From positions 75,578,001 through 75,642,000 of the forward strand of contig NC_043000.1 in assembly GCF_006345805.1 (NCBI RefSeq): a DNA stretch of 64,000 nt, in the 5' to 3' direction. The notes below the pieces were generated by a model that made no database searches, had not been told where the DNA came from, and was given only the letters and a program-made list of their open reading frames with translations. Below are positions 4,140-47,550 of this stretch, in pieces. Numbering within the stretch: position 1 is the stretch's first letter; each line of letters begins with the position of its first letter. Source of the DNA: Octopus sinensis. Taxonomy: Eukaryota. Position numbers and translations under genes: made by a program.

Positions 4140-4880
4140 AAGTTATTCACTTAGGTTGTATTGAATGAGGACCATTGGACCATTATGAATAGCAGTGGCT
4201 GCAGGATAGCGCTCTGTGGAACACCATTCATTATTTGTGATTTCTTGGAGGTGGCCTTTTGACTTCTGTCTTTTAGAAAGTCATGTAGCCATTCTCCAAG
4301 TTTTCCAGATATGCCAATATTTCGGAGCTTGTGATAAATCATACCAAGGTCGACTTTCTCAAAGGTCTTTGCAAAGTTGAGGTATATCACATCCACATTG
4401 GAGTTGTTGAGCAACTGCTTAAGCACCCAGTGGTAATGCTGCAATAGCTGTGTCAGGCAGTTTTTACCTGGTCAAAAACCATGCTGGGTATCAGTCAGTA
4501 AGTCATTCTCTTCAAGGAATGCGATTAATTTCCTTCCAACTATTCATTCCATGACTTTGCTGATGTGTGAGGTGAGAGAGATAGGCCTATAGTTTTTAGT
4601 AGCTCTGAAAAAGTAGCTGCAATGGTTTTGTAAGGACTTGTTTGCTTGACTTGAGGATAATTGCTGGGAATCTGTCAGGGCCAGCAGCTGAGTTTACGTC
4701 TATTGCTAGCATTACAACCTTTTTTCAATGTTGATGTAATCAATTCTTACTACCTCCTGTTCAGCTTCTGTAGCAGTAGAGAATTCTATAGGTTTGTGCA
4801 TATAAACTTCTGATCTATGATCCGTAGTATTTCAGTCTTCAAAGTTATTATTCATTCTGCAAATTTTGGTTTGTTGATCC
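4140..4880 (-). mobile_element. CR1/L2-group LINE reverse transcriptase fragment
   Basis: SAAGPDRFPAIIL, NYRPISLTSHISKVME, QHGF, NVDVIYLNFAKTFEKVD, GVPQSAILQPLLF. Confidence 0.85.
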
Positions 4881-4884
4881 CATG

Positions 4885-5560
4885 CCCAAAACTTCCTTAT
4901 AGACAATGTTTCAGGTTTTATCAGTAGGGATAAAAATGAAGATTGTCCTTGCCCCCACTATGGGGCCCCAACATATATAACTGACTGTCCTTCTCTAATT
5001 GCAAAGCAGTAACTTTCAAAGTCAGATGTTGGGACTTATTAATGGACATCGCAAAAGACAGTTGTATTATTAATTAAAAGTTGTTTGAATTGGAAGGGCA
5101 TATTGGAAGATATTAAAGGTAAGCAAGGAATAAAAACATCTTTGTCTTTTCAACAAGAAAGAATTTATTGTGGACTCTATGACGTTTCTTGCTAATTTCT
5201 TCACAAGTCTAGTGCCATTGCACAGTTTTGTTTGAGGAAGTCCTGCAGAAGCATGATTGGAGTGCCTATTTTCAATGAAAAGTAATGAGGAGGAGCTCCT
5301 TGTGTCTCAAGTGAGTTTAAAGAAGTCAATGGGGTAACTGACAATTTCCGAGTTATCAACAACAGAGTTTATAGATTTGTATGTTAATTTCCTGGAACAT
5401 TCTCGAGTCTTTCTTTTAAATTATTCACAGTAATGTTCTTTAGTGCCAGTTGTTTTATTTAGTTATCTCCCTAAATAAATGACAGAAGCTTAAAACCTGA
5501 AAGAGTGGTAATCTATTTGGGAACTGCAACATCTACATTTTGGAAAAGGGCCACTAGCTC
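4885..5560 (-). mobile_element. Helitron RepHel PIF1-like helicase C-terminal remnant
   Basis: Across frameshifts: [68 protein letters not shown]. Confidence 0.8.
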
Positions 5561-5727
5561 CCTTCAGGACAAACTTCCATTGTCTTCGGTGTAAAATTTT
5601 ACACAACATGTAGCTTTAATTTTTATATAGATGGTGTAGCCTTTTCTTGCTAGAGATGGTCTGATAGACAGACAGAAACAAATTTTCATCTTTATTATAT
5701 ACACACACATATAATATATCCTTATAT

Positions 5728-6262
5728 TCTTTTATTTGTTTCAGTCATCTGACTGCAGCCATGCTGGAGGATCGGCTTTAGTCGAACAAATTGACTCCAG
5801 GACTTATTTCTTGACTTATTCTATCGGTCTCTTTTGCTGAACAGCTAAGGTACAGGAATGTAAACACACCGACATTGATTGTCAAGTATTGGTGGGGGAA
5901 CAAACACAGATACATAAACACACACACATATAATATATATATATAACTAGTAGAGATACCCTGACTTGCTCGGGATTAAAATGGCATAGTTATTTATTGT
6001 TTTACTTTATTATTTCAGTTAGGTGACTGCAGCCATGCTGGAGCACAGCCTTTAGTTGAAAAAAATCGACTACAGGATATTCTTTTTAAGCCTAGCACTT
6101 ATCTATCAGTGTATTTTGCCGAACAGCTAAGTTATGGAAACATAAACACAGCAACATTGGTTGTGAAGCAATGGTGGGGTACAAATAGAGACACACATAC
6201 ACACACACAAATACATACATACATATGACAGTCTTCTTTCAGTTTCTGTGTAATCCACTCAC
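5728..6262 (-). repeat. Two partial copies of the tRNA-derived SINE family (same family as 19017 and 21605)
   Basis: tttcagtcatctgactgcagccatgctggag ... cttattctatcggtctcttttg blocks at 5740-5920 and 6015-6260. Confidence 0.75.
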
Positions 6263-6265
6263 AAT

Positions 6266-9200
6266 ATCATCATCCTCATCATCGTTTAACGTCCGCTTTC
6301 CATGCTAGCATGGGTTGGACAACTTGACTGAGGGCTGACGAACCAGATGGCTGCACCGGGCTCCAATCTTGATCTGGCAGTTTCTACAGCTGGATGCCCT
6401 TCCTAACATCAACCACTCTGAGAGTGTAGTGGGTGCTTTTACGTGCCACCGGCACGGGGGCCAGTCAGGCGATACTGGTAATGACCTCGCTCGAATCTTT
6501 TTATATATGCCACCGGCACAGGTGCCAGTAAGGCAATGCTGGTAACGATCACGCTCGAATGGTGCCTTTTACATGCCACCGGCATGGAAGCCAGCTAGCC
6601 GCTCTGTCAACGATCACACTCGTATGGTGCTCTTTGCACCCTGCTAGCACGGGTGCCAGTCATCAAATTTCACTTGCCTCAACAGGCCTTCGCAAGCAGA
6701 GTTTAGTGTCCAAAGAAAAGAAAAGGTACGCATAAGTGGGCTGGTTACGCCCCTGCCATAAGCCACGAGGTTATGGTCTCATTTGGCTTGCCAGGTCTTC
6801 TCAAGCACAGCATATTTCCAAAAGTCTCAGTCACTAGTTATTTCCTTGGTGAGGCCAAGTTCAAAGGTCGTGCTTCACCACTTCATCCCAGGTCTACCTC
6901 TTCCACAGGTTCCCTCAACCGCTAGGGTGTGGCACTTTTTCACACAGCTATCCTCATCCATTCTCATCACATGTCCATACCAGTGCAGTTGTCTCTTTTG
7001 TACACCACATCTGATGCTTCTTAGGTTCAACTTTTCTCTCAAGGTACTTACACTCTGTTGACTATGCACACTGACATTACACATCCATCAGATCAAACTG
7101 GCTTCATTCCTTGCGAGCTTACGCATGTCCTCAGCAGTCACAGCCCATGTTTCACTGCCATGTAGCATGGCTGTTCATACACATGCATCATACAGTCTAC
7201 CTTTTATTCTGAGGGAGAGGCCCTTTGTCACCAGCAGAAGTAAGAGCTCTCTGAACTTTGCCCAAGCTATTCTTATTCTAGCAGCTACACTTTCAGTGCA
7301 CCTTCCCCCGCTACTGATTTGGTCACCTAGGTAACGGAAGTTTTTCTCCCTGGAATGTGGCGGAAGTTGTTCTTTGCGCATTTTCAGTGTTTATTGCACC
7401 CGAAAATCTGCCACATACAAAAGCTATCTTCCCAGTTAGCCTTTCTTTGATATTACTGCACCCCTTATGTGTCCTTAGCTTACACTGGGTACATCTTATA
7501 GAGTTTCTACCTATGCCTCTACTACAGATCGAGCAGGGCCATCTGAAGGGATTTGTGGTTTGCCTGCCTTCCTACTTATTTGGACTTTGGCTTTAGTTAG
7601 GTTGATTCTAAGGCCCTTCGATTCTAATCCTTGTTTCCACACTTGAAACTTCTCCTCTAGTTCTGATAGTGACTCAACAATTAGAGCAAGGTCATCAGCA
7701 TAGAGGAGCTCCCAGGGGCATCCTGTCTTGAATTCCTCTGTTATTGCCAGGAGGACTATGATAAATAGGAGGAGGCTGAGGACTGAACCTTGGTGGACCC
7801 CTACCTCTAGCCAGAATTCTTCAGTGTACTCATTGCCAACTATCACCTTACTGACAGCGTCCCTGTACATGGCTTGCACAGCTCTCACTAATCATTCATC
7901 TATCCCTAGTTTCCTCATTGACCACCAGATAAAGGATTGGGGGCACCTATCAAAGGCTTTCTCCATGTCAACGAAAGCCAGGTACAGAGGTTTATCTTAG
8001 GTTAGGTATTTCTCCTGCAGCTGTCTTACCAGAAATATAGCATCAGTGGTGCTTTTCCCTGGCACGAACCCAAACTGCATCTCATCCAAACTCATTCTCT
8101 CCCTCATTTGTTGGGCTATGACCCTCTCTGTGACCTTCATTACCTGGTCCAACAGCTTGATACCTTTGTAATTATTTGTATCTAAAGCGCCACCTTTACC
8201 TTTGTAGCTGTTGATTATGCTGTCACACCAGTCATTGGGTATGACTCCTTTGTGTATCACCTGGTTAACTATATGGGTGACTAGGCTATAGCCGACACTG
8301 CCAGATATTTTGAGCATCTCTGTAGAAATTCCTGATGGGCTGGGGGCTTTCCCTGTCTTCATACTTTTAATTGCTTTATCTACCAGATATCTACTCAGAT
8401 AACTGGTCCCAATGTTGGATCAACATTCGGCAGACTCTCTTTCTCCCATTCATTTTCTTTATCCAGCAACCTTTCATAGTGGTGTCTCCAAACCTCTCTC
8501 TTTGCAGCCCCATTTAGTGCAAGAGAACCATCATCCATATGGACACATTTCTCTCCTACAACATCACGATTCTCTCTCACACACTGTCTTGCAACATGAA
8601 ATACCTCAAGTCTTTGATCCTCACGGCGCAGAACATTGGCAAATTTTTTTTCTTATCTGCCTCCGCTCTGGCTAAGTAAACCCATCCCCTAGCTTCTCTG
8701 TCTTCCAAGACTGTCTCTTTTCTCTAATAGCCCTGTCTACAAGATTTGTTCCACCACCACGACGTTATTTTGGGTTGAGAGGGGACTTTGCACCATCCAC
8801 AGATCTGGTCAGTGGCTCTCAGCAGGTTGTCCCGTAGAAACCTCCAGTTGTCTTCTACACTATGTGAAGCTATATCCTCTTCTATTTCGTCAAAGGCTTC
8901 GAGTAATATGTCTCTAAATCTCTGTCCATTCGCATGATCTTTAAGCTTCCAGACCCTTCTTTTCCATGTTGGTCGTCTTCTGGACGTCCACTTAGTCCTG
9001 ATCCTAAAGTCACTAACTACCAGTCTATGTTGTGGGGTACATTCTTCGCCTGGGAAGGTTTTGGCATTTATAAGCAGCTATCTTTCCCTTTTTCTGGCAA
9101 GGATGTAGTCAATTTGGCTGGTATGTTGGCCCGATCAGTAGGTGACTGGTATGTTTCCTGAAGTTAGTATTGCAAGCCATAAGATCATTTGTATCGCAGA

Positions 9201-9760: not shown

Positions 9761-11221
9761 GAAAAGAAAACTCGCATTTGGCAGAATTCATAGGCAAACA
9801 ATACAGTAGCCTTCAGTTCAACCTGCACACACTACCCTTTCATATTTTGCACTATATGATCATTACCTTACATAGGAAATAACCCTAGACTAGGCGTGGG
9901 GATGGCATAAAGCCTTTTGAAGTGTTCAGGGAGGCAACTCAGGGATGACAAAGGATAGGAACGATAGGAACTTCCGGTACAGGTGGAGGGGGTGGAAGGG
10001 CGGGAGCACCTCAAACAAAGCATAGTTTAAACAAGACAGCAAATGTTGATAATAGTAAAATAGACTTGAAAAATCTGGGAGTTCTCCGTCAGACATTCTA
10101 AGACAGAATTTAGGGGATAAATAAGTAACTGTATGATAAAACTTTAATAACTGAATGAGTCAATGAATATGTTGTAAGGTTATCTTAAGGGAACAAAAAG
10201 GAAGACGAGACTATTGAAAACTATATTTACATGATGGCATGTTACTGAACTAGACAGAATGATGAACAGAACTAATAGCGGAATGGTTTATGATCTGTGC
10301 AGAAATAGTAAGGTAGATGAAATGAGGTTGAAAAGATGAAAAAATTCTTATCTGTACATCAGGCATCCGTTATTCTTTGGCAGGGGATTGAAAGCGAGTG
10401 GGAGTCTGTGTGCGTGCGCTAGTTTATATAGGGCGGTGGTGGTGGAGGAAGTCTTGGCGAAGCGAGTGGTAATCGAAAGAGGGAGACAGAGAGAAAGAGA
10501 GACAGAGTAAGATAGAGAGAGAGAAGGGGGGAAGTGGTCATATATATATACACACACACATATACATACATACAGACATTTCGCATATATTATTAATTTA
10601 TCAGATATATGTGCTTAATTCCATATATGTAAAATACTCTTTGGTTTAAACCTGTTTAATTCCTTATCATTTATCTCTTATCTTAATCTGCATTGATAAT
10701 ATTTTATTTACAAATTTTTTTCTTATATTATATCATATTATACCATGCATTTATCCCTGTATTGTATTATCAGTACACCCTTTCAATAGCATATTTCTTC
10801 TTTTTTAGGTTTAAGGTTAACTCTTTTATTTTATTTTATTTATGTAACTTATTCTTTCATCTATTTATAATCTTTGTATGAAATTACATTTTGCATGTAA
10901 GTTGATCTACCTAATTAAATGTATGTTAAGTCTTATAATATACTCTAGTTAGCTTATGATAATTTAGAACTTTTGGTAAATCTCATATTAACCCCCACCC
11001 CCAACAACTGTTTTGCACAGTGTTCTATGATTCATGCTTATATATATATATATATAAAAAAGAATGACGGATTTTATGAATTGGCTTCATTGTGTTATTT
11101 TGGTGTATAATTATGCTTATTTCTCAGTTTTATTATTTCGTATATAATACATTTACTTATATATGAACTACATAGTTATGTTTATACCTATTTATTTCCC
11201 CCCACTAATAAGGAATCTATG

Positions 11222-35647: not shown

Positions 35648-35915
35648 TGTAGCCAGTCGACTTATACATACCTTTCCTTCTTGGGACACAAAACTCCACT
35701 TGTGAAGACCCGTTGAGGCAAGTGAAAATCAAAAATCAAAATCAAATTTAAACCAAATCAAACCAGATATCAGAAAGCAGAACTAAAGTAGCCAGTCGAC
35801 TTATACATACCTTTTCTTCTTGGGACACAAAACTCCACTTGTGAAAACCCGTTGAGGTAAGTGAAAATCAAAAATCAAAATCAAAATCAAATCAGATATC
35901 AGAAAGCAGAACCAA
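35648..35915 (+). repeat. Tandem duplication of about 135 bp in RTE 3' UTR
   Basis: gtagccagtcgacttatacatacc...gatatcagaaagcagaac occurs twice (from about 35648 and about 35788). Confidence 0.85.
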
Positions 35916-36659
35916 AATTGAAGCCGATCAACATCAATGGAAATTGCAGCTGTGATACCAGTGCCGGTGACAAGTAAGCGAACCATCCGATCGTGGCCGT
36001 TGCCAGCCTCACCTGGCCCCTGTGCCGGTGGCACGTAAAAGCACCATCCGTCCGTGGCCGTCTGCCAGCTCTGTTTGGCACCTGTGCGGGTGGCACGTAA
36101 AAAGCACCCACTACGCTCACGGAGTGGTTGGCGTTAGGAAGGGCATCCAGCCGTAGAAACACTGCCAGATCAGACTGGGCCTGAAGCAGCCTTCTGGCTT
36201 CACAGACCCCAGTTGAACTGTCCAACCCATGCTAGCATGGAAAGCGGACGTTAAATGATGATGATGTACAGGTGCACGGTGTGCCACATGTCAGATGATA
36301 AAACGATCGCAGGATTTTCCTTGTTCTGTCTCCTAGATTAGTTGTGAGAATCAACACTAAAGGGTTTGATCCACCCTGGTAGGCTTTCTGCATGCCTGGG
36401 CACCATACCAGGTATTTCTAGGTCCTCGCATGATACAGCCCTAAGACATTTATTGGATGGCCATTGACTCTCAAGAGTTCCTCCGCCCTTGACGGGTTTT
36501 GTTTTTCATCCCGCAGGGTGTCCAATAAACACCCTCCTCACCAAGCAATCTTGGTAGGGTTGCCAGTTTAGTCGCCGATGACCCGACCATGCAACAGATT
36601 GTACTGGGTTACATGTTACCAGTAGCACTCGAAAGTGACCTGACATATGTGTGTGTGTG

Positions 36660-37165
36660 TATTCGTTGTTACTACGTTTATTCATACATTGTTACGAAAA
36701 TTTAACCTTTTAGGCTACTTTCAAGCCTTCGCCATAACTTGATTTATCTTTCCTATCTCTCTCTCTACAAAATTTAACCTTAGGCTACCTCAAGCCGTAA
36801 TCCCAACTCTTCCCATCTTTCCGCCATTGGCGGTCTTTTTCCTCCTCTTCTTCTTCTTATGCTAAAACTTGAAAATCGCCATTACCATTACGATTCTGCA
36901 ATTTAAATTCCCAATTCAACTTACTTTCTTCTTCAATTTCAACTCTCGATCGATGCCCGCAGCAAGTTCTTAAAAATTTATCTTACTATTTTTATTCGTT
37001 GTTACTACGTTTATTCATACATTGTTACGAAAATTTAACCTTTTAGGCTACTTTCAAGCCTTCGCCATAACTTGATTTATCTTTCCTATCTCTCTCTCTA
37101 CAAAATTTAACCTTAGGCTAACTCAAGCCGTAATCCCATCTCTTCCCATCTTTCCGCCATTGGCG
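36660..37165 (+). repeat. Direct duplication of about 180 bp
   Basis: attcgttgttactacgtttattcatacattgttacg...ccgccattggcggt at 36660-36835 and about 36994-37167. Confidence 0.85.
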
Positions 37166-37194
37166 GTGCGCCCGCCCCCCCACCCCCACCACCA

Positions 37195-37899: not shown

Positions 37900-38140
37900 T
37901 AAAATGCTCGAACCGATCGTGACGATGCCGGACCCTCCGGCCCCTGTGCAGGTGGCACGTAAAAAGCACCCAATCCACTCACGGAGTGGTTGGCGTTAGG
38001 AAGGGCATCCAGCCGTAGAAACTCTGCCAGATTCAGACTGGAGCCTGGTGCGGCCCCTGGCTTCCCAGACCCGGTCAAACCGTCCAACCCGTGCTAGCGC
38101 GGAAAGCGGACGTTAAACGATGATGATGATGATGATGATG
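37900..38140 (+). repeat. RTE 3' tail
   Basis: ggcacgtaaaaagcacc...ggaaagcggacgttaaacgatgatgatg. Confidence 0.85.
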
Positions 38141-42392: not shown

Positions 42393-43171
42393 TTTAAAAT
42401 ATATCTAAAAATATTACATTGCATTTGTTATATGATACCTAAAAAATTTAAATGATGAAATGGGATACTTTTTATCCTAGCTCTGTTCTTTGAGGGTTAG
42501 CTTAATAGAAACTCTGTTCATTGAATAAAAGCTTTGTCATAATCAACTTTTCTTCCTCTAAATGGGACACTTGTATATCGATATCATTGGTCAACGTAGC
42601 TGCTTCCGCGTCATGCAATGTGTCAATGACAAGTGAAAGTCCACCCCTTTCTGAGTACTCGTTACGATGAAGACAAAGAAAGGAGAAATGGTTCTTCTAT
42701 AGAAGTTAATGAGATTGAGAAATTCTCACAGCTGGATGAACAGGAATATTTGTAATGCCATAGACTTCTTCCTTTAACAGAAGAATCCTATCTTTATCAA
42801 TATGTCCCAAAAATGTAATAGAAGAAAGGCCAAAAAGGACATTTACTGGGATTACACCCACCTATGACAATCTAGTAAAAAGTGCTGTTCATGCTGTTTT
42901 TGCTTAGGACTAGTAATCAGAAAGTTGCTGCAGGCAAAAAAAAAAAAAAAACTAAAGTCAAAACCACAAGTGACTTCCTCGCTAAATTTTTGGATTTCAA
43001 ACACCAAAAGACATTTGAAGAAATTCAAAAAGGATCCACAATATGTTAATATTTGATCCCTTACATTGTATGAAAAGCTGAGTAATTGTGACTGTTTTAG
43101 AAACATCAGCAGGTTTTATGGAAATCTGATTATAAGTGTGTACTAAATAGATTTTAAAAAGTACAACAATG

Positions 43172-43416
43172 TGTGGTGTGAATAATGAAGAGGACAACAG
43201 AAAAGGAGAAAGGAAATATAATTAGGTCTTACCTCGGCGAAGATTAGTCTACCAAACTCAGCGTCCAGTCGCTTCCGCGTCTCAGCTCCAACTGCCCCGG
43301 CTTCGTTGATGCCCCACGTGCGTCGTCCCTCACCGCTTCCGCTTCCTGCCGCGCATGCGCCCTGCAAGCCCTACTTCCGCCCTCCCCTATCTGTCGTCCT
43401 CTCCACCGACACCACA
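43172..43416 (-). repeat. 3' LTR
   Basis: TG...CA termini; direct repeat of 46993-47237. Confidence 0.95.
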
Positions 43417-43482
43417 CGCCCCCCTGATCTACAGATCACTGAACCGGCTTTCTCACTCGCTCCCCGCTCCCGAACTCACACC

Positions 43483-46370
43483 TTAACTGGTTTCATAATC
43501 AGCCAACCAGGGAGGAGGGTGCCGTTCCCTCTGTGGTCGCAGTGCGACCCTAAGACTGGTTCCTGGTATGTTGCTGCTGGCCTCATCATCCTGTCTACTG
43601 GTGTTGTTTTCATCTTGCCCACTGCTGCTGGTCCCATCCTCTGAGGTATGGACAATCCTCCGTATATCCAAAACGTGGCATGGCATACCATCGACCGAGA
43701 TGTTATTCTTTGAATTTACAGAGGTTATTGTCCCCTTTCCCCATTGTGATGTACACCGTGCGTTTGGGAGTTTTACCCAAACTTCTTCCCCGTCCTGCAC
43801 GAAGGCGTGCTCTTCCTCTGCCCCGGGTCGCATTGATGCAGTACACGGATGCCTCTACTCGTACCTGAATATTGCCCTGTGTGGCACCGACTCTTCAGCC
43901 TGTCCTGATCTGGGCGACATATTGTACCAAAATACAACCTCGATTGGTGAAATGTGACCCCTCTCTGCCATGGCCTTGATGGTGCGATGATGCCTTTCCA
44001 CTACCCCATTTCCACTTGGCCGGTATGCCGCCCTGAAGAAGCGGTTGACTTTCCACCCATCAAGCATTTCTTTCAGCACATCTGAGCGAAATGCAGTGCC
44101 ATTATCCAGAAGCAGTTCATCCACGGGGCCTCGTTCCAGGAATATCTCATTCAACACTTTCACAATTTCTTCTGCGGTCCCCGTCTTCATCTCCCTCCAT
44201 ATGGCCAACCGCCCCGGTTCGCAGTCAACCATTGAGAGGTATGTCCCCTGCCGGTAGTGTGTTATGTCCACCGCCAGTCGTTTCCAGTCATGGTCCACTG
44301 GAATACTTCCCGCTTCATGTACGCCCGGAGCAGGGTCGATGGACTGGCACCTGTCACAACTGCTGACCATCCTCTGCACGCTCTGTCTTGTTACATCGGA
44401 GTAAACTTTTCTGGCTAGGAACAATGTCCTGTCCACACCCATGTGATGCATGGTATGCAGTTTCTGCAACTCCGAGTCGCTCAGACGGCATACTGCAGCT
44501 ACAGCCTGCTTCGCATCCTCTGGCACCTGCAACCAGGCTCGCTTTACCCTGGTCAGGACGTCTGCCCTGTTCTCGGAAGGCACAAAGATCATGCTCAGCT
44601 TCAGATTGAACTCAGTGGTTAGTTCACGCAGTATTCCCAATCGACGCTTTACCAGCATCTCTGCAGCCCCTTTGGTCCGCACCCTCCGCTCATTGGTGAT
44701 GACTGCTGTCACCCAGCCAAGTACAGTGGCCAAATCAGTCCTGGTTTCTATGGTGTGCAACCCCCACTTCAAGGCCAGGTTCACCCCCTTCAACACGGCA
44801 TCCAACTCCGCCACATTGATGTGATTGCAGTCATCCGTCTTCCTGAGCCAGGCTGCATCTTCCACCATGACACCTCCCACTTCTAAGACAACCCGTGTTG
44901 CGATGCTGCTGGCGTCACACCATACGATCCCGCTCTTTGATTTGGGAACATACTAGCTGCCCCTCACTGGGTTCTCTGCTCCTACTCTGACCAAGACTTC
45001 CTGCATCATGTCTATCGTCTTCTCCCCCACTCTATCATTCCACTTCACTCCTTCGGCTCAACTCTTGATGAAGCTACATGCTGTCCGGAGCCAACCTGCA
45101 ATCGGGTAGTGTCCCACCAGCTTCCCACACACAGAGAACAGTTCCCGTCTACTCATGCTGGCGCCCAGTTCAGGGACCTCATTCCCTCGCCGGAACACCA
45201 ACGCACCGGCCTTGTCTCTCCATAGCTTGAGGCCCAGTGCAGCACCTCCCTCCATTGCCTCTGGTGGCTTGGCGATCAGTCCCAAACTCTTCAGGTGGCC
45301 TATGACCTCCGTTGCTGGTATCACGGTTTCATCCACCAGAATGTCATCGATGTACGAATTGGTGGCCCTTTTTACCCTGTCCACCTTTCCCAGGATAGCC
45401 TTGAGAATTGTTGCCATAATCTTTGGCGCTGAATTCAGCCCGAACCCCAACCTGGAAAGACAGTAAGTCCGGCCCTTATACCTGACGAGCTGTTACTTCC
45501 ACAATTTCTCAGCCACATGCACCTGTAGGTATGCCGACTTCAAATCAACAATCGTGGAGGCCCCTGTCATCTGTCTCCACTCTCGCAAGGTGTCTCCGCA
45601 GACATCCGTGGCCTCGCCGCCTGTATGACACGATACGTGGTCATTCAGCTCTCGGAAGTCAAGCACTGGCCTGACCTTATGCTTTGTGGGCTGTATCACC
45701 GCCATCAGTTGCAGGACTCCGCTCTCTTCTTTTTCCCAAGGGATTAATATGCCCTCCTTAATCCACCGCTCCACCTCCCCCTCAAACTCGCTTCTGGCAT
45801 CTCCTGCTGATAGCAGCCCACTTTATTCTTTAACATCGGGGGCTCTCCCTTCCAGTGCCACTCCACTGTCCACCTCTTGCCATCAAAGACAGCTCGAAAA
45901 TCCTGGTCTTCAATGGTGTGCACAGCATGCTTTTCCTCACGGTTGTCGCCGGTGCATGGTCTCGCCCTACACGGTTTCCCCGCTATCCCAAATGTTACAC
46001 CAGCCTCGTTAACGGTGACACCTCCCAAGCGGGTGATTGCATCCATCCCCATCACCACGTCGATCACGTCCACCAAGTGACCAACCACAATCGCTCGCAG
46101 CGTCAGCTGTAGTCCCTGCACCACAATCCGCGCATCTGTAACCCCTTCGCAGTGTACTTTTCTTCCGTCGACAGCTCTAACACTGCTTCCTCCACTTCAC
46201 GTCTCTGCCACTTCTGTAGTCATCAGGGTTGTTGTACAGCTCGTGTCCACAAGGGCTCGCGACATCTTCCCCTCCACCAGAATGTCGATCACAGGTAGCG
46301 ACGATAAGCGCGCCTCTACTGATCCGAAGGGACAATTACCGGCGCAGTAGTCTCCCGCAGTCCGTTTCCC
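43483..46370 (-). pseudogene. pol: pol (protease-RT-RNase H-integrase), broken by stops and frameshifts
   Basis: ORF fragments 46197-46418, 45744-46124, 45493-45774, 45058-45450, 43855-44880 and 43483-43833 reconstruct one polyprotein ending RPQRERHPPPWLADYETS. Confidence 0.9.
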
Positions 46371-46939
46371 CGCAGACACTCGCTGGCTATATGCCCCGGC
46401 TCTCGACACCGGTAGCAAATCACCGCTGCTACCAACGTCATCCTACTGCACGAAACTAGTACGCGTACCCGAGATATGATGTCCGCCATCGGCATCGAAT
46501 GCACATTCGGAAGCTGCTGTAGCTCGACCGACATGTTGTCGGGAAAGCCAGTCACGAACGCCAACCTAACCGTCCGGTCCAGCGACTCTCCCTCGTAACC
46601 CGCCAGTTTAGCCAATCTCCTAAGTTCATTGGCAAACACGTCCACCTGTTGCCCAGTCCATCTTGTTCTACCCAGGCGAGCGTATGCCTCGAACATTCCC
46701 TCCGAAAAGGCCTCCATCAACCGGACTTCCACTTTCACCGCGCTGAGTTGGTCTGTCTCTTCCATCTCTAAATACAACGCCAACGCCGGACCATCCAAGT
46801 ACAGCGGCATGAAGCTCGCCAGGTCACTTATACCATGGAGCTTCGCCACTAACTTCACTTTCTTCAGCCAAACGACTACATCCGTGTTGCCGCAAAACGG
46901 TTTTATAATTTCGTGCGAAATACGGGCACTCATCATCAT
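46316..46939 (-). CDS. gag: gag (207 aa, C-terminal CCHC zinc knuckle), open frame
   Basis: ORF track; IKPFCGNTDVVVWLKKVKLVAKL...YLDGPALALY; CX2CX4HX4C motif. Confidence 0.85.
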   Translation of the reverse strand: MMMSARISHEIIKPFCGNTDVVVWLKKVKLVAKLHGISDLASFMPLYLDGPALALYLEMEETDQLSAVKVEVRLMEAFSEGMFEAYARLGRTRWTGQQVDVFANELRRLAKLAGYEGESLDRTVRLAFVTGFPDNMSVELQQLPNVHSMPMADIISRVRVLVSCSRMTLVAAVICYRCREPGHIASECLRGNGLRETTAPVIVPSDQ

Positions 46940-46980
46940 TTTTATTTATAAAACCGTGTGAGAATTGTTTTTGTTTATAT

Positions 46981-46992
46981 GCCGAAATAGCT
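46981..46992 (-). promoter_or_regulatory. Non-canonical primer-binding site complementary to tRNA-Phe nt 1-12
   Basis: Plus strand GCCGAAATAGCT abuts the 5' LTR and equals the recalled first 12 nt of metazoan tRNA-Phe(GAA). Confidence 0.7.
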
Positions 46993-47237
46993 TGTGGTGT
47001 GAATGATGAAGAGGACAACAGAAAAGGAGAAAGGAAATATAATTAGGTCTTACCTCGGCGAAGATTAGTCTACCAAACTCAGCGTCCAGTGGCTTCCCCG
47101 TCTCAGCTCCAACTGCCCCGGCTTCGTTGATGCCACACGTGCGTCGTCCCTCACCGCTTCCGCTTCCTGCCGCGCATGCGCCCTGCAAGCCCTACTTCCG
47201 CCCTCCCCTATCTGTCGTCCTCTCCACCGACACCAAA
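46993..47237 (-). repeat. 5' LTR
   Basis: Direct repeat of 43172-43416; one substitution in the terminal TGTGG. Confidence 0.95.
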
Positions 47238-47550
47238 CAATGTAAAGAAGCCGAGAAATGATTATTATGTGGAACTGAGTAAGTATGTAGCAGAAGCGGT
47301 TACCAGAGGCGTGTGTGCAAGGTTAAAGCTTCAACTGTTTAACATTAAATATCTTCAGTTAGATTATACAAAGCTTCCTCTTTCAGCTGTTACGTGATCT
47401 GGTGATCGGGCGAGTTGGTTGGTCAAGCACAACTATCAAATCGTGTCCCTACAACAAGTCATTTCCCCCATTAGTGGGAAAATCAAGCACCAGGCCACAG
47501 AATATATAAATAGCAGTTTATTCGACTGTCCGGCCTCTTTTTCCTCAGAC

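Follow-up and report, generated by a model that had tools for sequence, protein, structure and literature searches.

Three modes of minus-strand priming are found in textbooks: LTR elements begin reverse transcription from the 3' end of a tRNA, from an internal position or half of a tRNA as in copia and Ty5, or by self-priming as in Tf1. Sites of the copia/Ty5 type pair with the anticodon-stem region (approximately nt 25-39), and the tRNA is cut in the anticodon loop. For Tf1 and Tj1, a passage in PMC4600332 that cites Levin 1996 describes an 11-nt 5'-terminal RNA primer freed by RNase H cutting of an RNA duplex. The element described here, from the genome of Octopus sinensis, carries at its LTR edge 12 nt complementary to the first bases of a tRNA, which points to an undescribed start of reverse transcription. 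We found no primer site complementary to tRNA nt 1-12 in the full-text literature searched, in which subscription journals are thinly covered; older transposon papers may mention one.

The window, meaning the whole 64,000-nt stretch of O. sinensis DNA analysed, contains a dead LTR element of 4066 bp (~4.07 kb) at 43172-47237 with the minus strand as its sense strand, and all coding ORFs of the element in the ORF list lie on that strand. A direct-repeat search matched 43172-43417 to 46993-47238 at 98% identity, and both ends were then read, giving LTRs of 245 bp. The features of the element in window coordinates are as follows.

43167-43171, no strand: target-site duplication CAATG, left copy; the same pentamer lies outside both LTRs.
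43172-43416, minus: 3' LTR (sense orientation), 245 bp, termini TGTGGTG...CACCACA, 98% identical to 46993-47237.
43417-43438, minus: polypurine tract region, sense TGATCT-GT-AGATCA-GGGGGG-CG, adjoining the 3' LTR; read directly and from the alignment of relatives.
43483-45774, minus: RT (YIDD), connection domain (DUF7047), RNase H and integrase in a single frame, from translation and Pfam.
45744-46418, minus: protease region in a separate frame, from ORF translations against the family consensus.
46316-46939, minus: gag ORF, 207 aa, with a CCHC zinc knuckle (Pfam zf-CCHC, E = 6e-6).
46981-46992, minus: 12-nt putative primer-binding site AGCTATTTCGGC, the complement of tRNA-Phe nt 1-12 (GCCGAAAUAGCU), in the same place in 13 relatives.
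46993-47237, minus: 5' LTR (sense orientation), first bases mutated to TTTGGTG; from the LTR pair.
47238-47242, no strand: target-site duplication CAATG, right copy; pentamer read directly.

The structure is that of an LTR retrotransposon, with TG...CA termini and a 5-bp target-site duplication (the duplications of the relatives are likewise 5 bp), and the domain order protease-RT-RNase H-integrase, the CCHC gag and the polypurine tract before the 3' LTR are all present. On the sense strand the sequence before the 3' LTR is TGATCTGTAGATCAGGGGGGCG, a G-rich polypurine tract. Pfam matches in the pol frame are to DUF7047, RVT_3, rve and Integrase_H2C2, and the frame is collinear with intact pol proteins of 884-1068 aa in relatives; its natural stop is 43483-43485, and four in-frame stops interrupt it (45493-45495, 45058-45060, 44953-44955 and 43855-43857). 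The protease has DTS at its active site in place of the DTG of the family consensus (ALVDTGCST...FDGxxWTVxWxWK), and its frame contains an in-frame stop at 46197-46199 and a frameshift relative to the RT frame at ~45775-45810. This copy is inactivated by the stop codons and the frameshift. Identity of the gag is 69% with an Octopus sinensis protein and 43-57% with the gag of relatives. We also considered the element as a deletion derivative of something larger and rejected this, intact relatives being ~4.2 kb with a gag of ~260 aa and a pol of ~940 aa.

Attention was drawn to the LTR edge by an earlier note made from the window's letters, which had read the sense strand as CACCACA, a 12-mer and then AT, with no TGG. 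Direct reading of the window gives exactly this: the 5' LTR ends ...CACCACA and is followed by AGCTATTTCGGC and by ATATAAAC... leading into gag, and on the plus strand 46981-46992 is GCCGAAATAGCT followed by TGTGGTG, the LTR edge, from 46993. The leader from the LTR to the gag ATG contains no TGG on the sense strand. That U12 of the tRNA falls at the LTR edge, as the same note proposed, is borne out by boundaries set independently by the second LTR copy and the target-site duplication CAATG. Complementarity over all 12 nt to the start of tRNA-Phe also holds, human tRNA-Phe(GAA) beginning GCCGAAATAGCTCAGTTGGGAG with GCCGAAATAGCT as its 5' end (PMC10505166). The 12-mer occurs once in the window, with no second copy at up to 1 mismatch, whereas shuffled sequences average 0.21 matches with 1 mismatch or fewer; the chance of an exact 12-mer at one fixed position is ~6e-8 per tRNA 5' end considered.

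The ALTERNATIVES tested were Tf1-type self-priming, a mirror image of a 3'-end site, and local RNA folds. An ordinary 3'-end site read in mirror image is ruled out by the orientation relative to the LTR and by AGCUA, which lies outside the acceptor stem; the earlier note's statement that the match does not mirror the acceptor strand is correct, because AGCUA is the complement of tRNA nt 8-12.

The conservation that the note suggested checking is present, the 12-mer lying directly after the LTR in 13 further independent copies or relatives. These are two elements from Octopus sinensis, one each from Argonauta, Aplysia, Watersipora, Petrolisthes and Oratosquilla, five environmental elements and one distant relative; their junctions were read rather than the entire elements, with boundaries from LTR pairs and target-site duplications. 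Junctions are given below as the LTR end, the 12 bases and the bases that follow.

Octopus sinensis A (L011), LTR identity 98.6%: ...TTATCACA, AGCTATTTCGGC, aaaa
Octopus sinensis B (L011), LTR identity 97.5% over the 122-bp aligned part: ...CACTACA, AGCTATTTCGGC, acat
Argonauta hians (L012), pol intact, LTR identity 100%: ...GATCAAG, AGCTATTTCGGC, catt
Aplysia californica (L014), LTR identity 99%: ...AAACTACA, AGCTATTTCGGC, gagg
Watersipora subatra (L136), LTR identity 90% over 147 nt: ...ATACCACA, AGCTATTTCGGC, aaac
Petrolisthes manimaculis (L013), LTR identity 100%: ...AAACTACA, AGCTATCTAGGC, ctaa
Oratosquilla oratoria (L015), LTR identity 97%: ...GAATCACA, AGCTATCTAGGC, actg
Environmental element L004, LTR identity 98%: ...TATTACA, AGCTATCCCGGC, ctag

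Contigs without both LTRs (L002/L003, L005 and L006-L009) carry AGCTATCTAGGC at the same distance class from gag. An alignment of 12 independent junctions reduces the invariant positions to the LTR-terminal A..A.A and AGCTAT---GGC and nothing else; the variable triplet, which pairs with tRNA nt 4-6, is TTC, CTA or CCC. Conservation does not extend past base 12, position 13 being A, C or G, and apart from this the U5 ends and leaders cannot be aligned, with no other conserved block between LTR and gag. The 12-mer lies 3-45 nt upstream of the gag ATG at a distance that varies between elements. In the distant relative, with 41% pol identity and located on a contaminant contig of a bacterial MAG, AGCTATCCGGGC stands five bases before the gag ATG and is the exact complement of human tRNA-Lys3 nt 1-12 (PMC8715211). 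Two copies are off pattern, and both are decayed. L010 has lost the 5' LTR end together with AGCTAT, and L001, from Octopus sinensis, reads ATTGGTATTTCGGCAC at the site. The earlier note had held that a normal TGG site in other copies would speak against its proposal; in 12 of the 13 relatives there is no TGG between LTR and gag. The TGG of L001 was considered as a normal site (complement ...GCCGAAAUACCA) in what is an old copy, with LTRs 86% identical and an internal deletion, and was rejected as secondary because the copy is decayed and its close relative L011-B has the normal 12-mer. In L011, two different family members with the same 12-mer lie less than 5 kb apart (2-1749 and 4841-9102), and one of them, with LTRs only ~1.6 kb apart, is probably internally deleted.

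Short motifs such as AGCT are common, and an ordinary leader might by chance resemble a tRNA 5' end. We regard this as a negligible prospect, since the identical 12-mer recurs in four phyla next to flanks that cannot be aligned, and three different variants each equal the first 12 nt of a real tRNA. Pol identities are uniformly 56-58% for all pairs of the Aplysia, Argonauta, Petrolisthes and Oratosquilla elements, so the site variants are not assignable to host as opposed to element lineage.

The complement of the site has the form GCC-NNN-AUAGCU, in which the seven bases of an acceptor strand come first, then U8, A9, G10, C11 and U12, with nt 4-6 variable. In eukaryotic tRNA-Phe, no modification other than m2G10 is known within nt 1-12, and m2G10 blocks neither pairing nor copying. 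In the molluscs and the bryozoan the site is the complement of GCCGAAAUAGCU, the canonical metazoan tRNA-Phe start (with human tRNA-Phe as reference), which begins Drosophila and Bombyx tRNA-Phe as well, and in two crustaceans and several environmental contigs it is the complement of GCCUAGAUAGCU. The predicted 5' end GCCUAGAUAGCU joined to a generic D arm was scanned across metagenome contigs, and the matches were classed by ARAGORN; 90 of 121 are tRNA-Phe(GAA), with 19 Met and 5 Thr, and most are bacterial. The scan also recovered nine metazoan-type tRNA-Phe(GAA) gene copies on eight contigs, reading GCCTAGATAGCTCAGTTGGGAGAGCGTTAGACTGAAGATCTAAAGGTCCC[C/T]GGTTC[A/G]ATCCCGGGTCTGGGCA, with CCA not encoded and a T-run terminator. 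They share the D arm and the anticodon arm of the human and Drosophila tRNA-Phe genes. Their 3' acceptor strand, UCUGGGC, compensates the two changes, which indicates that the GCCUAGAUAGCU form is a real tRNA-Phe variant and not a decayed copy. Another variant is accounted for by GCCCGGAUAGCU, the start of human tRNA-Lys3 (PMC8715211), whose complement is in the distant relative; GCCGGGAUAGCU, the complement of the L004 site, has so far no matching tRNA. Three of the four site variants thus correspond to the first 12 nt of documented metazoan tRNAs, namely two forms of tRNA-Phe and tRNA-Lys3.

Several observations on tRNA genes may be recorded here. On metagenome contigs, metazoan-type GCCUAGA/UCUGGGC tRNA-Phe(GAA) genes lie at L017 423-495, L100 1873-1945, L095 29-102 and 1549-1621 (two copies 1520 bp apart), and L107 4973-5045, and they share a conserved 25-35-nt trailer, possibly a hairpin (...CCCNGGGGGTCGGC...), before the T-run terminator. 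The window gave no tRNA gene with ARAGORN, and ten host loci gave none for tRNA-Phe; the one tRNA gene detected there is a tRNA-Val in L015. The Oratosquilla element in L015 (LTR start 5363) lies ~195 bp from this tRNA-Val(CAC) gene (5095-5167, minus), a single case that consequently says nothing about targeting of pol III genes.

Of the described systems, canonical 3'-end priming (HIV-1 with tRNA-Lys3, HTLV-1 with tRNA-Pro) resembles the present elements in the choice of a host tRNA, in a site directly after U5, and in switching between tRNA species within a lineage, here Phe and Lys. It differs in using the opposite end of the tRNA and a site of ~18 nt rather than 12, and its plus-strand stop is the modified base m1A58, where here it would be the tRNA 5' terminus. 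The site in the window neither starts with TGG nor complements the CCA, acceptor or T-arm sequence of a tRNA 3' end. With copia, 1731, Ty5 and Candida Tca the likeness is to a cut tRNA (iMet or Arg) that exposes a 3'-OH and leaves its CCA end unpaired, but the present site is complementary to nt 1-12, which would place the cut in the D stem, and the primer would be about three times shorter. The site is no complement of the anticodon-stem region of tRNA-iMet, all 12 nt being accounted for by tRNA-Phe nt 1-12.

The resemblance to Tf1 and Tj1 lies in a short site directly after U5 (11 nt there, 12 nt here), the lack of TGG, and a primer that is a 5'-terminal stretch of RNA in need of a cut to provide a 3'-OH, a cut that is presumed in the present case. 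The Tf1 primer is its own transcript with the complement in the LTR, in contrast to a host tRNA that would act in trans through its 5' end, and the pol of Tf1 is chromovirus-like whereas the pol here is retrovirus-like, with a connection domain and a cellular-type RNase H. Tf1 also needs a complex RNA structure, while RNA folds around the site in four of the present elements are nothing special, being no more stable than shuffles and sharing no structure. The length of the site, its place directly after U5 and the missing TGG, all reminiscent of Tf1/sushi elements, would also suit self-priming proper, in which the partner of the 12-mer is the start of the element's own transcript, within the LTR. 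Such pairing would require the LTR to co-vary with the site, yet the site is identical among elements with LTRs diverged past alignment. In the LTRs of five elements (the window copy, Argonauta, O. sinensis A, L004 and L002) even the closest match to the complement differs at 3-4 or more of the 12 positions, and exact runs are 5-7 nt at the longest. Since no complement was detected within these LTRs or elsewhere in the window, we rejected self-priming and consider it highly improbable. From its sequence, the site appears to work like a cross between Tf1 priming and tRNA priming, and it lacks the defining feature of each known class.

What the sequences show directly is the position of the site, its conservation, its pattern of variation, its agreement with the 5' ends of real tRNAs and the lack of a self-primer; from these we infer annealing, cutting and priming. 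The reading that we regard as probable is that the 12 bases after the 5' LTR are the minus-strand primer site and pair with nt 1-12 of a host tRNA, tRNA-Phe in the window element, and that a cut after U12, for which the element's RNase H is the probable enzyme, frees the primer from this tRNA. In the proposed pathway the zinc-knuckle nucleocapsid of Gag would open the acceptor stem of the tRNA and the first part of its D stem, allowing G1-U12 to anneal to AGCUAUUUCGGC on the genomic RNA. A tRNA annealed by nt 1-12 leaves 64 nt on its 3' side, which makes a cut after U12 a requirement, and the rest of the tRNA would be removed at this point, the end of the 12-bp RNA duplex. The likeliest nuclease would be the element's own RNase H, a domain present in its pol (RVT_3 / RNase_H Pfam matches). 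The new 3'-OH would then be extended through U5-R, the primer/DNA junction setting the LTR edge with no spacer; the primer would end at U12 because its 3' end must pair with the base adjoining U5. During plus-strand strong-stop synthesis the polymerase would copy the 12-nt RNA and run off at tRNA nt 1, leaving a site of exactly 12 nt. That the conserved block ends at tRNA nt 1 is expected if a 12-nt RNA primer is copied to the end of its template in each cycle. Against this reading, a 12-bp RNA duplex is short, a tRNA nuclease that cuts after nt 12 is not known, the L004 variant has no tRNA partner so far, and the RNA folds around the site are unremarkable.

The same site and the same tRNA could also be used by a ready-made primer, a 12-nt 5' piece of tRNA-Phe that is produced by a cellular nuclease and packaged. 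The sequence evidence is the same for both possibilities, and reviews report abundant 5' tRNA fragments in animal cells. The 5' fragments described are 14-35 nt long, however, and would have an unpaired 3' tail unable to prime. A cellular nuclease with a cut at 12/13 is not known either. That nt 7-12 (AUAGCU) stay the same in users of tRNA-Phe and of tRNA-Lys fits a cut set by the end of the duplex as well as a fixed cut by the host. A trans version of the Tf1 reaction is favored over the ready-made fragment because Tf1 provides a precedent and because known 5' fragments exceed 12 nt and have an unpaired 3' tail; we consider the fragment an unlikely source of the primer.

The proximity of the site to gag, merely 3-45 nt upstream of the ATG, allows a different function, in which the 12-mer binds the tRNA 5' end or another partner for packaging, dimerisation or translational control of gag and another primer starts the minus strand, priming by the 12-mer being itself a proposal from sequence. 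This alternative is harder to reconcile with a site that is always exactly at the LTR edge, where the 3' end of a primer must sit, while its distance to the ATG varies and neither a TGG nor any other conserved block occurs between LTR and gag. The end of conservation at tRNA nt 1 is, in addition, what a site regenerated by primer copying is expected to show. We judge a purely non-priming role quite unlikely, somewhat more so than a ready-made fragment, and retain priming by a host tRNA cut in place as the working interpretation.

At the other end of the element, TGATCT-NN-AGATCA and a G-run are conserved directly before the 3' LTR in an alignment of 10 relatives. The palindrome or hairpin TGATCT-NN-AGATCA sits directly 5' of the polypurine tract in every family member aligned, as at window 43425-43438 (minus), L002 1-14 and L013 ~10614-10627; in the Argonauta copy the stem is kept by a compensatory change, TGATG...CATCA, and in the distant relative L137 another 6-bp stem, AAGATT...AATCTT, takes this position. 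The palindrome may be a mark for the primer of the plus strand, or it may serve in dimerisation. Elsewhere in the window, approximately 6-10 kb from the element, are a dispersed SINE-like 94-nt repeat with copies 94% identical (36077-36170 and 37939-38032) and local tandem duplications with units of 110 nt and 175 nt (35649-35897; 36660-37167). An Rfam search of the window gave no match.

Relatives of the pol number in the hundreds. Their hosts include the cephalopods Octopus sinensis, O. bimaculoides, Argonauta hians and Acanthosepion, the gastropod Aplysia, the crustaceans Petrolisthes, Oratosquilla, Portunus, Penaeus, Trinorchestia and Amphibalanus, the sea spider Nymphon and the bryozoan Watersipora, and many more copies of ~4.1-4.5 kb are on marine metagenome and transcriptome contigs. 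No relatives were found in a viral contig collection. Some family copies are deposited in bacterial MAGs of Bacteroidota, Pseudomonadota and Granulosicoccaceae (P0146, P0191, P0214, L137 and L138); these are eukaryotic contamination of metagenome bins.

Among solved structures, the sequence matches are to retroviral integrases (MMTV and lentiviruses) and to MLV RT, and an AlphaFold model of moderate confidence (mean pLDDT 66) has its best matches in foamy-virus PR-RT-RH and HIV-1 p66. Judged from these matches and the model, the architecture of the pol, with protease, RT, connection domain and cellular-type RNase H, is retrovirus-like. Membership in BEL/Pao was rejected in the absence of Pfam matches to Peptidase_A17 and DUF1758/1759/5641 and with a pol of ~940 aa; the pol of BEL/Pao elements is roughly twice as long. 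Troyka was likewise set aside, as it requires a 3-bp target-site duplication and CG...CG termini (PMC12440569) and the present elements have 5 bp and TG...CA. As in Odin, lokiretroviruses and Retroviridae (PMC12440569, PMC9040795), RT is separated by a connection or tether domain from an RNase H that is not of gypsy type. Odin is reported from cnidarians, whereas the family here is ~4.2 kb, lacks env and occurs in molluscs, crustaceans, a sea spider and a bryozoan, as far as descriptions can be compared. A relation of the family to the Odin/lokiretrovirus group is possible. The papers on that group contain nothing on primer sites (PMC12440569, PMC9040795).

If the proposed mechanism is true, priming from the tRNA 5' end through a 12-nt site would join the three textbook modes as a fourth and would link tRNA priming mechanistically with Tf1 self-priming, and a Tf1-type cut of an RNA duplex would be able to act on host RNA. 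On this reading, strong-stop cDNA should carry 12 nt of RNA, the cut should fall after U12, and plus-strand synthesis should run off at tRNA nt 1. Annotation tools that match tRNA 3' ends will call such elements devoid of a primer site. Copies of the family abound in cephalopods, gastropods, crustaceans and marine metagenomes. The broader proposition, that a widespread, retrovirus-like clade of animal elements primes from the 5'-terminal 12 nt of host tRNAs (Phe, and Lys in a side branch) released in trans by its own RNase H, is one that we hold in even balance. Because its pol is retrovirus-like, the family bears on the origin of retroviral replication features.
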